Sequence record: NC_049340.1
Reading direction: 5' to 3' (one strand)
Length of the DNA: 64,000 bases
The notes beneath the pieces are model-generated. The model had not been told where the DNA came from and did not search any database. It saw only the letters and a list, made by a program, of their open reading frames with translations. Positions 47,081 through 55,526 of the stretch are shown piece after piece. The translations under genes and the position numbers were made by a program. Position 1 is the first letter of the stretch, and each line of letters opens with the position of its first letter.

Positions 47081-47509
47081 ATGGAAATTACTATAAAAAA
47101 TTTAAAATTAGTTGATTCAATAATTACACAAAAACTAACAGAAGACCACATAAAAAACACAGTATCTACTGTACTATTACAGGGTATTAAAAATTTACAA
47201 TTCACATACGAAAATGAATTAGGCGAAACATATTTAGAAAGTGTTGTGTTAAATTTCGAAGTTGTTCGAGATAATGATGGTGATTTTAGAGTTGTTTTTG
47301 ATGATAATTTATATTTATTTGATGATACAAATAGAAGAAGTCTAAATGGCATTTATGTAGTACCAGTTATTGACTCAACATTCAGTAAACTAATGAAATA
47401 TTCTTTTGTTGATGGTGCTGAAATTAGATTTTATGAAATATTCCATTCAAATCTTAGTGAATTTATTAATGGTATGGTTGGGGTTAAAGTTACAAACGAT
47501 GACATCTAA
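47081..47509 (+). CDS. Hypothetical protein
   Basis: 142-aa ORF. Confidence 0.7.
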   Translation: MEITIKNLKLVDSIITQKLTEDHIKNTVSTVLLQGIKNLQFTYENELGETYLESVVLNFEVVRDNDGDFRVVFDDNLYLFDDTNRRSLNGIYVVPVIDSTFSKLMKYSFVDGAEIRFYEIFHSNLSEFINGMVGVKVTNDDI

Positions 47510-48101
47510 ATACACCGAGGTTAGATTATTCTTTGAAATACCTACAGAATTTAATAAGGTAGAAACCCATCGTGTTTTATTAAAACTAAATGTAGTTTTA
47601 GAATCTAATTCGGATGCAGATAACCACCTTTCTGATATAAATAAAAAATGGATTATTGATGAGTTAAATTTCTATGATGGTATAAATAATTGGGATGTTT
47701 ATTCAACAAAGGTTGTTGATGGTCACCTAGAGGAAGAAAGTGCCTCATTTATCATACGCAAGACCAAAAAACAGATGTTAGCAGAGAAGTTATTAGCAGA
47801 GAAGAGAAAAGAACATTCTACTGTATTAAAAACCAAGCCTAATTTTGATGGTGAGTATGTTATATTTGGTTCATATAAGTATGATTTATACACTTTATCA
47901 TATCTTTGGGGTCGATATACTAGAAACGAAAAATATAACGATAATGGGTTGTATTTGGGTAAGCGTGATCGAACAGAAGTTATTGAAGAACCAAAACTAA
48001 CTGCTGGTATATTTATATTCTGTTATGATGGGTATAGATACGAAGTTAAAATAAATAGATATATTGCACATTCGGTATATAAAGTCGAAGAGCAATATTA
48101 A
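47499..48101 (+). CDS. Hypothetical protein
   Basis: ATG at 47499 overlaps the previous stop region. Confidence 0.65.
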   Translation: MTSKYTEVRLFFEIPTEFNKVETHRVLLKLNVVLESNSDADNHLSDINKKWIIDELNFYDGINNWDVYSTKVVDGHLEEESASFIIRKTKKQMLAEKLLAEKRKEHSTVLKTKPNFDGEYVIFGSYKYDLYTLSYLWGRYTRNEKYNDNGLYLGKRDRTEVIEEPKLTAGIFIFCYDGYRYEVKINRYIAHSVYKVEEQY

Positions 48102-48110
48102 AAATAATTT

Positions 48111-48188
48111 AAAAAGCATTTGGAATATCCAAATGCTTTTTGTATTTTGTATAGTAAATGTGAAACATTAACTATGGTGAAAGCCATC
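48111..48188 (+). promoter_or_regulatory. Palindromic promoter plus leader hairpin (copy 5)
   Basis: aaaaagcatttgga-ata-tccaaatgcttttt (48111-41); gtaaatgtgaaacattaac, then atggt-gaaa-gccat. Confidence 0.65.
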
Positions 48189-48207: not shown

Positions 48208-48936
48208 ATGTTAAATATAGGTTTTTCTAATAAGTATTTTACCCTGTGGGATGTTTGTGAATCAACCGAATATAATTCTAATGGGTTACCATATAAAACT
48301 ACAAGTTATATGTATATCCAAAACTTATCCATTGATAAAGATTCTGCTTTAAATAAAGCATATAATTTAGGATGTAAATCTAAAATTGTTGACTATTCAT
48401 TAAAGGGTACTAAGGGATGGATTACAAAAGAAAAATTATATTCAGATATACCAAAACATTTAGCACCATTTTTTATGTTTGGTAAATACTGTGATGAGAA
48501 TATTTTTGATTGTACAGACTACAAGTATTTATATTGGTACTATTCGGAAACTAATAACATTCCAGCTAAAAAAGTTCTATTGAATAATGGATATTTTGAA
48601 CATAATGGGGATTTATTATCTGAATCTGAATATAATAAAATCAATAAACTAAATAAAATTATATCAAATATTGGTGATACTATCATAATAACGTGTGATA
48701 GAAATTTAAAAGTTGATGATGATTATAACGCATATGGATATTTTGAAGTATCAGATGATATAAAATTACCATTTTACTTTAATGATTTCAAAGTATATGA
48801 TTATCGTGGTATTGAGTATGCATTACCAACAATAAACGGTGCTGGAAAGAGGATAAAAAACAAACAATTAGAAATTAAAGTATCGGAAGTAACTTCTGAT
48901 GTTGATATAATTGTTGAATCATTTAAAATATTTTAA
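48208..48936 (+). CDS. Hypothetical protein with FGKY-type domain
   Basis: FMFGKY...DYKYLYWY motif. Confidence 0.65.
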   Translation: MLNIGFSNKYFTLWDVCESTEYNSNGLPYKTTSYMYIQNLSIDKDSALNKAYNLGCKSKIVDYSLKGTKGWITKEKLYSDIPKHLAPFFMFGKYCDENIFDCTDYKYLYWYYSETNNIPAKKVLLNNGYFEHNGDLLSESEYNKINKLNKIISNIGDTIIITCDRNLKVDDDYNAYGYFEVSDDIKLPFYFNDFKVYDYRGIEYALPTINGAGKRIKNKQLEIKVSEVTSDVDIIVESFKIF

Positions 48937-48943
48937 GAAATAA

Positions 48944-48975
48944 TTTGGATATTCCAAATACTTTTTGTATTTTTG
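48944..48975 (+). promoter_or_regulatory. Sigma-A promoter with TTGGA-N3-TCCAA palindrome
   Basis: TTTG 48944-47, 20-nt spacer, TATTTTTG 48968-75. Confidence 0.7.
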
Positions 48976-49007
48976 TATAGTAATAATTAAACAATAAATA
49001 AAATCTT

Positions 49008-49799
49008 ATGAATACGTACAATTACTTAAAAGATATGCCTATTTCAGAGGTGTATAATCGAGTGGCTAAAATTGATTTTAGCCACTTCACAAAACAATGT
49101 TCAAATAGACCAAAAGAACTTGGATACACTAGTGTAAACGAGTATAACGATGAACTTAAATACTTGGTTAAATTGTCTTGGTGTCTAGTTTATGAAGCAC
49201 TAGGGCTACCATGGGGTAACAACATCAATATTAAATCACATGGCAGATTTGGTGACACAAATTTCAAAACACGAATAGAACCATCTGTAAGTGGTGAGTT
49301 AGTTAATGTTGCTGTAGTTGATTATTATTTGATGAACTTATATTCAATGTTATTAATTAATGCATATGGTATTGAGTATGGTATACCACATTTTGGTGAA
49401 GTTTATGAGTTGATGGTTAAATTACGTAAATATTCTAAAAAGATTGAATATTTAGGTGAAACTGGCAGAAACTTAACATATGATTTGAAGTGTTTAATTA
49501 ACGCATCATATCTATACATCACACATCATAAATTTCAAATTGAAAGGTATGGTAAAACAACAAATAACATATTTAACGACTTATATAATGAGGTTATTGG
49601 TGATGTTTTGAAGAAATATAAGAATGATGTTTTGATAATGGATATTGACCATATTGTTTTAGTTAATGGTAGTGAGGGTCATATGAAGTTAAAGCAGATT
49701 ATAAAGGATAACAAAATAAAGTATCGTAAGAAAGTTTATAGAGCGTTCGAATATATTGTATACAATAAAATAGATAGGTTTAATAACAAAAAGAAATAA
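49008..49799 (+). CDS. Stand-alone divergent family-B DNA polymerase palm/fingers-like protein
   Basis: EPSVSGELVNVAVVD..MNLYS (motif A), KCLINASY (motif B) and IMDID (motif C) in correct order. Confidence 0.5.
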   Translation: MNTYNYLKDMPISEVYNRVAKIDFSHFTKQCSNRPKELGYTSVNEYNDELKYLVKLSWCLVYEALGLPWGNNINIKSHGRFGDTNFKTRIEPSVSGELVNVAVVDYYLMNLYSMLLINAYGIEYGIPHFGEVYELMVKLRKYSKKIEYLGETGRNLTYDLKCLINASYLYITHHKFQIERYGKTTNNIFNDLYNEVIGDVLKKYKNDVLIMDIDHIVLVNGSEGHMKLKQIIKDNKIKYRKKVYRAFEYIVYNKIDRFNNKKK

Positions 49800-49801
49800 T
49801 C

Positions 49802-50920
49802 ATGTCACACGAAAACGACCCATTTAAAATAAAAAATTATAAAGTAGTAAGAGGTCATAGAGAGTTTGATATTTTATTCGAAACTGTTGTTGGTTCTGTA
49901 GCATATGGAACAAACGTTGATGGTTCAGATATTGATATCAAAGGAGTGTTTTTACAACCACTTTCAGACCAATTATTATATGGTAAAATCCAACAAATTG
50001 TTGTTGATAAGGATACTGTTTATTATGAACTTAGTAGAGTTATTGAATTAATTTCAGTAGGTAATCCAACAATGTTAGAGATGCTGTTCATGCCGAATAG
50101 ATGTATTAGATACATGACCAAAGAATTTAGAGAAGTGATGTATAATGATGATACAAGACGTTCATTTATTACTATGAATTGTCGTAAAAGTTTCTGTGGT
50201 TATGCATACCAACAAATAAAAAAGGCTAGTGGATTAAATAAGTTGATGAACTTCGAAAAGGATGGATACTTTTCTGAACCTAAGGATGTTCTTGATTTTT
50301 GTTATGTATTTAACGATAGATTAGGTATTACAGAACCTGTAAAGGACTTATTATACAGAAGAAATCCACACGCAAGAAAGCAGGAAAATTATGGTCTTGT
50401 TAAGTGTAACCATACCATTAACACATTCTTTGTGTATTATTTCAATGAGTCAATGGAAAAGCGACCTAGTGGATTTATTGGAAGTGATTCTAATGAATTA
50501 AGAACATCATTAGTACCTAAGGGTATGCAGGTTGATTTTATTGTTCAATTTAATCATGGTGCATATAAAGAACACAAAAAGAAACACAAACAATATAAAA
50601 CATGGATAAAGGAAAGAAATACACAGAGGTATGTTGATTCTAAAACCCATGGACAAAAGATTGATGGTAAGAATTTATTACATTGTGTTAGATTGATTGA
50701 AATGGGTCGAGAACTAGCAGAACAAAGATGGATGAACGTTGAACGCCCAAATGCAAAAGAGTTAATTAAAATTAGAAAGGGTGAGGTTAATTTGAGTGAA
50801 TTATTAGATAAGTCTGAGAAACAATTGAGAGAGGTTGAAGATGTTTTCAGGGAATCTAAATTACCAAAAAACGTTTCACCAAAGTTAGTAAGAGATATTA
50901 AAACAAAATTTTATTTATAA
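49802..50920 (+). CDS. Pol-beta superfamily nucleotidyltransferase (phage Nuc-transf type)
   Basis: VGSVAYGTNVDGSDIDIKGVF; GNPTMLEML; KNLLHCVRL. Confidence 0.85.
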   Translation: MSHENDPFKIKNYKVVRGHREFDILFETVVGSVAYGTNVDGSDIDIKGVFLQPLSDQLLYGKIQQIVVDKDTVYYELSRVIELISVGNPTMLEMLFMPNRCIRYMTKEFREVMYNDDTRRSFITMNCRKSFCGYAYQQIKKASGLNKLMNFEKDGYFSEPKDVLDFCYVFNDRLGITEPVKDLLYRRNPHARKQENYGLVKCNHTINTFFVYYFNESMEKRPSGFIGSDSNELRTSLVPKGMQVDFIVQFNHGAYKEHKKKHKQYKTWIKERNTQRYVDSKTHGQKIDGKNLLHCVRLIEMGRELAEQRWMNVERPNAKELIKIRKGEVNLSELLDKSEKQLREVEDVFRESKLPKNVSPKLVRDIKTKFYL

Positions 50921-50922
50921 TC

Positions 50923-51578
50923 ATGCCAAAAGTAGGAGTAGTTAAATTAGATGAATTTGGCGAGTACACAGGTCAATCAACTTTTAGTGGTACAGCATCA
51001 ATACCTATTCATTACAGTTTTCAAAAAATAAATTTTATTTCAATAGTGATGATTTAACTAAGATAGGTATTGACCCAATAACATCAACAACATCAGCTAA
51101 ATCACGTGATGGTGCAATTGCTTTACTAGAGTTTGAGTTAGGTAGAGCATCAAACAAAGAAAAGTATTTATGGTTTAATGTTGTATTTAATCTTGATAGT
51201 AAACTAGAAACCAATGAAGTTTCTAAGAAAATAACGGATTATGCTTATGGTAGTCGTGTAAACTCTTCAATAATTGAGTTTTCTTATGGTAAGTGTTTAA
51301 AGGCTATCACACCACATGCAAATGAACTTATATACATTAAAACCGATGATAATTTCGTTGAACTTAAACGAAAGTCAACTATTTATCAACAACGTAATGT
51401 GTTCATAAAATACACCCAACAAAGAGAAGAGTTCCTAAAAAGCATTGTTGATGGAATCCAAACAATAAATGATAAGTTATTAACGTTTTTTGTTGATTGT
51501 GAAAGTGAAGAGCGTGTTGCAGAACAAATAGACATTATAGAAAATTCAAAAAACTTATTAGGTGCAGGAAGTAAGTAA
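50923..51578 (+). CDS. Hypothetical protein (apparent 1-nt deletion at 51023-28)
   Basis: Restoring one A gives a continuous ORF of about 218 aa, missed by the track. Confidence 0.55.
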
Positions 51579-55486: not shown

Positions 55487-55526
55487 AAAAAGCATTTGGA
55501 TAATTCAAATGCTTTTTGTAGTTTTG
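55487..55526 (+). promoter_or_regulatory. Palindromic promoter (near copy of 48111-48149)
   Basis: aaaaagcatttgga-taa-ttcaaatgcttttt; TTTG 55495-98, 20-nt spacer, TAGTTTTG 55519-26. Confidence 0.75.

Follow-up and report, generated by a model that had tools for sequence, protein, structure and literature searches.

In the genome of Tenacibaculum phage PTm1 (genus Shirahamavirus; AP019524.1; 224,680 bp), a jumbo phage that infects the fish pathogen T. maritimum, we identified a small orphan gene, ORF1, whose product probably adopts the palm plus fingers fold of family B DNA polymerases (PolB). It is followed immediately by ORF2, which encodes a nucleotidyltransferase of the RlaP family. RlaP itself is already known; its pairing with a PolB-like protein is new.

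The window analysed here is the 64,000-nucleotide (nt) stretch of NC_049340.1 that corresponds to positions 62001-126000 of the PTm1 record, and all coordinates are in window numbering unless marked as record positions (Table 1). Its GC content is ~29%, and the + strand carries nearly all genes. In GenBank, ORF1 (open reading frame 1) is the hypothetical protein PTm1_ORF-149, with a start at 49035 (254 amino acids). This start agrees better than 49008 with the N-terminus of the homolog P0002 described below.

Table 1. Features of the ORF1-ORF2 region of PTm1, in window coordinates
Feature	Position	Strand	Description
Promoter/operator-like motif	48945-48980	+	Palindrome TTGGATATTCCAA then CTTTTTGTATTTTTGTAT, Bacteroidota-type TAnnTTTG box; ~30-60 nt upstream of ORF1 start
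ORF1	49008-49799	+	263 amino acids; orphan, predicted standalone PolB-type palm plus fingers
Motif-A-like strand and helix start, VVDYYLMNLYS	residues 103-113, nt 49314-49346	+	D105, N110, Y112
Motif-B-like helix, KCLINASY	residues 161-168, nt 49488-49511	+	K161, N165, Y168
Motif-C-like beta-hairpin turn, MDIDH	residues 211-215, nt 49638-49652	+	D212, D214
ORF2	49802-50920	+	372 amino acids; RlaP-family (PF10127) Pol-beta nucleotidyltransferase
Third gene of the unit (annotated ORF-151 + ORF-152)	50923-51578	+	Frame break at A6 run 51023-51028; ~219 amino acids if read as in relatives

PolB-like motifs and predicted fold of ORF1

Three elements of ORF1 follow one another in the order of PolB motifs A, B and C. 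A loose regular expression for this ordered triple matched 1 of 20,000 shuffles of ORF1, and ORF1 was the sole match among the 194 PTm1 ORFs of at least 150 amino acids. An exhaustive phmmer search of 1.84 billion representative proteins recovered one relative, P0002 (243 amino acids; 27% identity over ORF1 residues 87-259; E 4e-8). Despite this low identity, 9 of the 13 ORF1 residues named beforehand are identical in P0002 (E91, P92, N110, Y112, K161, N165, Y168, D212 and D214; hypergeometric P ~0.001). The motif C pair, D212-I-D214, is common to both proteins and is flanked in the AF2 model by hydrophobic strands (208-211 and 215-219). For motif B, both proteins have K161-x3-N165-x2-Y168, which lies on a predicted helix (156-172); the Ser is shifted by one position and the final Gly is absent. 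The genuine PolB of PTm1 has the canonical forms VDFSALYP, KLLCNSVYG and YADTDS.

A reading of this DNA made from its letters alone (hereafter, the sequence-only reading) had quoted the three motif strings and proposed that both metal-binding aspartates are retained. All three strings are found in ORF1, with one residue missing from the motif A quotation (four residues lie between D105 and N110). The statement about the aspartates does not hold as made, because that of motif A is out of register: in D105-YYLM-N-L-Y112-S it stands 7 residues before the Tyr, compared with 5 in the canonical DxxSLYPS, and Y107 occupies the canonical position. In the homolog, the motif C aspartates are identical. 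D105 is not identical in P0002, the Asp of which lies two residues later, at canonical spacing, in the sequence DIKNFYA. The motif A aspartates of the two proteins could be brought into agreement if ORF1 carries a loop insertion of two residues. The same reading had noted the absence of an exonuclease or thumb domain, and this was confirmed: the motif-A-like element begins at residue 103, the protein ends 49 residues past motif C, and 263 amino acids leave no room for exonuclease, N-terminal or thumb domains. In PTm1, PF03104 matches the real PolB alone, at record 165.7 kb, and not ORF1.

Structure predictions lean in the same direction as the motifs. The ESM Atlas model of ORF1 (pTM 0.64, pLDDT 0.69) aligned over 199-222 residues with at least five independent PF00136 clusters from archaea, bacteria and viruses (TM 0.54-0.60, query-normalised), and also with an unnamed viral cluster of 281 amino acids (TM 0.59/0.56). 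When P0002 was compared by features, the nearest family-bearing clusters were PF00136 and PF03175, with lead-level scores. The AF2 model from a two-sequence alignment (pLDDT 40) contains a strand (103-109), a helix (111-120), two long helices (129-148 and 156-172, the latter with K161, N165 and Y168), a further helix (185-203), a hairpin (208-211/215-219, with D212-I-D214 at the turn), a helix (223-234) and a strand (238-244). This is the order expected of a PolB palm plus fingers, and the motifs are placed as they are in PolB.

Foldseek searches of the PDB with this AF2 model returned DNA polymerases, mostly of family B, for ~45 of the top 50 matches (best E 0.027). Matches in BFVD were mostly phage DNA polymerases and ‘PolB-like’ proteins (best non-self E 1.6e-4), together with subunits of the UL8 type and a pair of unnamed viral proteins (266 and 290 amino acids long), and the best match found by VIA was Pol alpha 859-1047. 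An all-helix, single-sequence model with identical residues served as a control and matched no polymerase (best Foldseek E 2.8); the fold signal therefore stems from the predicted geometry. Judged from these models, a PolB-type palm plus fingers fold is probable for ORF1. The label ‘PolB-palm-like’ in the sequence-only reading thus survives in part: in the Foldseek comparison that it had suggested, and in the VIA search, PolB and other palm polymerases dominate the structure matches, at sub-significant scores, and motifs B and C are kept in P0002, whereas profile methods detect no PolB.

If the motifs were convergent or coincidental, ORF1 would instead have a generic RRM-like palm, such as those of reverse transcriptases, Y-family polymerases, cyclases or Thg1, or another fold altogether. 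We consider an origin outside PolB unlikely. The Atlas matches are specifically to PolB families and extend over 200-220 residues that take in the helical fingers, PolB predominates in the Foldseek rankings, and a K-x3-N-x2-Y helix between two Asp-bearing elements is a PolB-specific arrangement.

Among known proteins, ORF1 most resembles the PolB catalytic core (PF00136; RB69 gp43, Pol alpha, archaeal PolB and PTm1 ORF-236/239/241). It shares with this core the order and spacing logic of the A-, B- and C-like motifs, the predicted order of secondary structure and the predicted-structure matches over the span given above. It differs in its size (263 compared with at least 550 amino acids), in the lack of N-terminal, exonuclease and thumb domains, in having no significant sequence or profile similarity, and in the details of motif A (Asp-to-Tyr distance of 7 instead of 5 residues) and motif B (no final Gly); the PTm1 replicase is encoded 54 kb away. 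Neither ORF1 (at E up to 1) nor P0002 was matched to PF00136 by Pfam hmmscan. We have not filed ORF1 as a PolB because membership fails on profile similarity and domain complement.

Linkage of ORF1 to RlaP

By its sequence, ORF2 is clearly an ordinary member of the RlaP family. It scores 63 bits against Pfam PF10127 (gathering cut-off 23; E 4.4e-17) and matches phrog_388 (2e-43) over residues 23-366, which is near its full length. The Pol-beta nucleotidyltransferase signature (hG[GS], DxD and a third carboxylate), which is GS...DxD...D in this family, is present as G31-S32 and D43-I-D45 (together nt 49892-49936) and D71, all of which are invariant in the RlaP that is encoded beside P0002. The TAA stop codon of ORF1 (49797-49799) is followed by ‘tc’ and then by the ATG of ORF2 at 49802 (junction TAAtcATG). 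The sequence-only reading, which had placed a Pol-beta nucleotidyltransferase 2 nt after the stop of ORF1, was therefore correct on this point.

RlaP enzymes were recently shown to add 1-2 nucleoside monophosphates to the 3'-OH of damaged RNA (reported for PfRlaP and PaRlaP), to require three conserved aspartates and to be needed to restore the function of over-trimmed tRNA before ligation (bioRxiv 10.64898/2025.12.29.696909). Among the end-restoring nucleotidyltransferases that jumbo phages encode, RlaP is the commonest, and its occurrence follows that of their RNA ligases (PMC7824862). The published contexts of RlaP are ligase, RtcA and kinase genes, and no ORF1-like partner has been described in the RlaP literature. 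The RlaP of PTm1 is coupled to ORF1, a protein unrelated to it, with no RNA ligase adjoining; RtcB (ORF-203) is encoded ~37 kb from ORF2 and is not adjacent.

The P0002 gene is found on a metagenome contig of 5.4 kb (L006), where it immediately follows, and overlaps by 8 nt, a gene for an RlaP of 388 amino acids; the gene order is thus swapped relative to PTm1. The contig derives from a PTm1-related phage (GC 30%; MazG 74% and RlaP 58.5% identical). Upstream of ORF1 in PTm1 are two orphans, ORF-147 (47406-48101) and ORF-148 (48208-48936). L006 has a homolog of ORF-147 (28% identical) in the same relative position, and lacks ORF-148, in place of which there is an unrelated 117-amino-acid gene. 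The swapped order of two genes whose ends are still joined, next to a neighbour that has changed, argues for selection on the linkage between ORF1 and RlaP. Co-transcription of ORF1 and ORF2 is supported by their 2-nt junction, by a promoter-like motif upstream of ORF1 only and by the conserved adjacency. From this arrangement of genes, we somewhat favour a functional link between the two proteins.

An adjacency that was simply inherited would allow ORF1 to be a palm-like protein that is independent of RlaP and whose target is DNA or the deoxynucleoside triphosphate (dNTP) pool, for example modified cytosine nucleotides. The pair is known from two related phages only, RlaP elsewhere has unrelated neighbours, and this region of PTm1 is rich in genes for nucleotide metabolism and DNA modification (MazG, a deoxynucleoside monophosphate kinase-like protein, NAD-dependent ligase and a DNA-hypermodification cluster). 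Furthermore, the conserved Tyr112 occupies what we take to be the site of the PolB sugar steric gate (RB69, phi29), which would favour dNTPs. However, the two genes still abut or overlap after the order was swapped and the flanks changed, and the junctions are tight in both phages. We therefore regard independence from RlaP as improbable.

The family could not be extended beyond these two phages and PTm5. A tblastn search of 50,697 phage records with ORF1 found PTm1 and PTm5 only, and a word-indexed search of 5.8 billion proteins returned ORF1 itself only. Enlargement of the family by word searches with ORF1 and P0002, or by tblastn against phages, produced no new members. Searches of viral contigs with alignment A1 and of metagenome contigs with the RlaP alignment also yielded no further members of the ORF1 family.

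A possible partner in RNA-end healing

We tentatively suggest that ORF1 derives from PolB and assists RlaP in RNA-end healing, as a partner that binds or transfers nucleotides. The suggestion is made because the Lys-Asn-Tyr helix, which contacts the dNTP or NTP, and the Asp pair are selectively retained and because ORF1 is tightly coupled to RlaP. ORF1 would be a standalone miniature of the PolB catalytic core, consisting of a palm and short fingers without N-terminal, exonuclease or thumb domains, and in PTm1-like Bacteroidota jumbo phages it would form a translationally coupled module with RlaP. Before ligation, RlaP would extend the 3' ends of damaged RNA by 1-2 nucleotides, in a phage that also has RtcB. 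ORF1 may bind a nucleoside triphosphate through its conserved Lys/Asn/Tyr helix and D-x-D hairpin, and probably also a nucleic-acid 3' end, and could thus help RlaP to heal RNA ends that were cut by host nucleases, either by complementary nucleotidyl transfer or by presenting the substrate.

For the gene pair, the sequence-only reading had offered tRNA or RNA repair, signal synthesis, counter-defence or an inactive polymerase decoy. The identity of ORF2 as RlaP, an RNA 3'-end-healing enzyme, favours the first of these options; claims of activity, signalling or a decoy role gained no support. ARAGORN found no tRNA or tmRNA gene in the whole 225-kb PTm1 genome, although RtcB and RlaP are present; any repair would therefore target host RNA or phage transcripts.

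Several observations weigh against a PolB-derived partner of RlaP. ORF1 had zero family matches in Pfam (E up to 1), PHROGs, NCBIfam and PADLOC, the last of which assigned it to no defence or anti-defence family, and a profile search against the PDB was empty. In hhalign, the two-member profile was compared with three pseudo-contiguous PolBs built by joining the separate PolB pieces of PTm1, LR745206 and Lak-C1 (an in-frame TAG in Lak-C1 was read as Q for this alignment only). A single local match was obtained, in which motif B aligned in register with KLLCNSVY, and it was not significant (P = 0.36). AF2 confidence is low, with a pLDDT of 38 from the single sequence and of 40 when two sequences were aligned, and all fold-search scores are under the usual thresholds. 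D105 of the motif-A-like element is displaced by two residues, and we know of no PolB that works without a thumb. ORF1 also evolves ~3 times faster than RlaP. Among seawater relatives, nucleotide identity is 87-94% for ORF1 and 95-98% for RlaP (20 synonymous and 9 non-synonymous changes among the RlaP variants listed), and at the deeper divergence between PTm1 and L006, identity is 27% for ORF1 and 58.5% for RlaP. Because L006 comes from a relative of PTm1, the pairing may be partly inherited. Finally, searches by hidden Markov model (HMM) and by motif found an ORF1-like neighbour beside RlaP in 0 of 33 other phage loci (6 GenBank phages and 27 IMG/VR contigs); RlaP therefore does not need ORF1.

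These 33 loci led us to reject ORF1 as a general accessory of RlaP, and five of the RlaP-bearing phages examined have no ORF1-like gene anywhere in the genome. On the basis of these sequence comparisons, ORF1 is an RlaP partner specific to the PTm1-like lineage. The genes that abut RlaP in other loci encode GIY-YIG, Acb3, metallophosphatase, UDG and radical-SAM proteins. On one IMG/VR contig (L022:3249-3941), the gene that overlaps the start of RlaP encodes a homolog of the CBASS inhibitor Acb3 (PF25187, E 6e-36), which places a counter-defence gene beside RlaP.

ORF1 may be catalytically active, although we hold this with reserve. A PolB descendant without catalytic activity, serving as a scaffold or nucleic-acid-binding subunit that recruits or regulates RlaP or another partner and comparable to UL8 or to the Pol epsilon C-terminal half, would fit the out-of-register Asp of motif A, the missing thumb, the fast evolution of ORF1 (27% identity compared with 58.5% for RlaP) and the UL8-type helicase-primase subunits among the fold matches. 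Such inactivated modules, in which a fold descended from PolB serves purposes other than replication chemistry, have been described (herpesvirus UL8 and the Pol epsilon C-terminal module; PMC7544198). These homologs are full-size proteins whose catalytic motifs have decayed and been lost, whereas ORF1, a minimal core, retains most of these motifs, with K161, N165, Y168, Y112 and D212/D214 identical in a relative of 27% overall identity. Moreover, the Asp of P0002 is at canonical spacing, and in an alternative alignment that allows a loop insertion of two residues, each protein has an Asp there. We thus give little credence to a dead scaffold.

Beyond the tentative assignment to RNA-end healing, ORF1 might be active as the smallest PolB-type enzyme known, with a palm and fingers only, and form with RlaP a new repair module of two enzymes for RNA ends, to which ORF1 would contribute templated or substrate-specific nucleotide addition of which RlaP alone is incapable. 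This is quite unlikely; if true, a PolB core would work without a thumb or exonuclease and act on RNA ends. In the surveys of PolB consulted, which leave out fragments of <200 residues, no palm-only protein that stands alone is described (PMC7544198, PMC12926913).

The Thg1/TLP enzymes, which are palm-domain tRNA-end-repair enzymes of ~250 amino acids that restore nucleotides at tRNA ends, were also compared with ORF1. Thg1 adds nucleotides in the 3'-to-5' direction, and its palm resembles that of family A polymerases. ORF1 was not matched to this group at Pfam E up to 1 and has a PolB-like motif layout. A lead to Thg1 was rejected, as the A1 HMM matched the Thg1 gene of a Vibrio phage at 4.9 bits, which is noise. 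Jumbo phages carry Thg1/TLP in their RNA-repair gene sets (PMC7824862).

If the fold and the partnership hold, ORF1 would be a natural minimal PolB core, with a bearing on the evolution and reducibility of the replicative palm and fingers, and a new accessory to the RlaP/RtcB arm of RNA repair that jumbo phages deploy against the RNA-cleaving defences of their hosts. The ESM Atlas and BFVD matches to unnamed viral proteins of 260-290 amino acids hint at a wider, unrecognised class, for which BFVD entries A0A2I7SB81 (266 amino acids) and A0A2I7RYN6 (290 amino acids) and Atlas clusters of 281, 259 and 288 amino acids are candidates. If ORF1 is inactive or unrelated to RlaP, it would be merely another fast-evolving phage orphan.

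The putative transcription unit and the PTm1 replicase

The sequence upstream of ORF1 belongs to a recurrent 26-nt motif, TTGGAWATWCCAAATRCTTTTTGTAT, in which a palindrome is followed by a T-rich box, and which has 4 matches in the window compared with 0 expected. Three copies on the + strand (48120-48145, 48945-48970 and 55496-55521) lie ~60 nt upstream of ORF-148, ORF1 and ORF-159, respectively, and the fourth match is the same palindrome read on the - strand. Upstream of ORF1, the TAnnTTTG box extends to 48980. There is no copy between ORF1 and ORF2. This short stretch recurs on many contigs of related phages from four public runs, and we regard the motif as a candidate class of phage promoter or operator.

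ORF2 is joined to the third gene of the unit by TAAtcATG, a junction identical to that between ORF1 and ORF2. This gene is annotated as two ORFs because the PTm1 reference has a 1-nt deficit at the A6 run; the frame is open but without a start codon. One additional base gives a single ORF of ~219 amino acids in relatives: an A following 51022 in a near-identical contig (run X1), or a G following 51023 in X5, a diverged relative from seawater. The break may reflect a slippery site, a genuine mutation or a sequencing error in the homopolymer. The ATG at 50923 reads CTG in X1, and the third gene had no family match.

We also considered ORF1 as a piece of the phage replicase and rejected this, as PTm1 encodes a full PolB in three pieces, with textbook motifs, at record 165174-171501, and BLASTP of ORF1 against the pieces was empty. 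In this replicative PolB, ORF-236 contains the exonuclease domain and motif A, ORF-239 contains motifs B and C followed by an N-intein, and ORF-241 contains a C-intein followed by the thumb; homing-endonuclease-like ORFs lie between the pieces. The PolB of Prevotella phage Lak-C1 is likewise broken after motif C (DTDS), with intein-like sequence following, and in LR745206 two PolB halves are ~100 kb apart. The middle piece of the Lak-C1 PolB (L016, record ~390995-391360) contains one in-frame TAG, consistent with stop-codon recoding in Lak megaphages.

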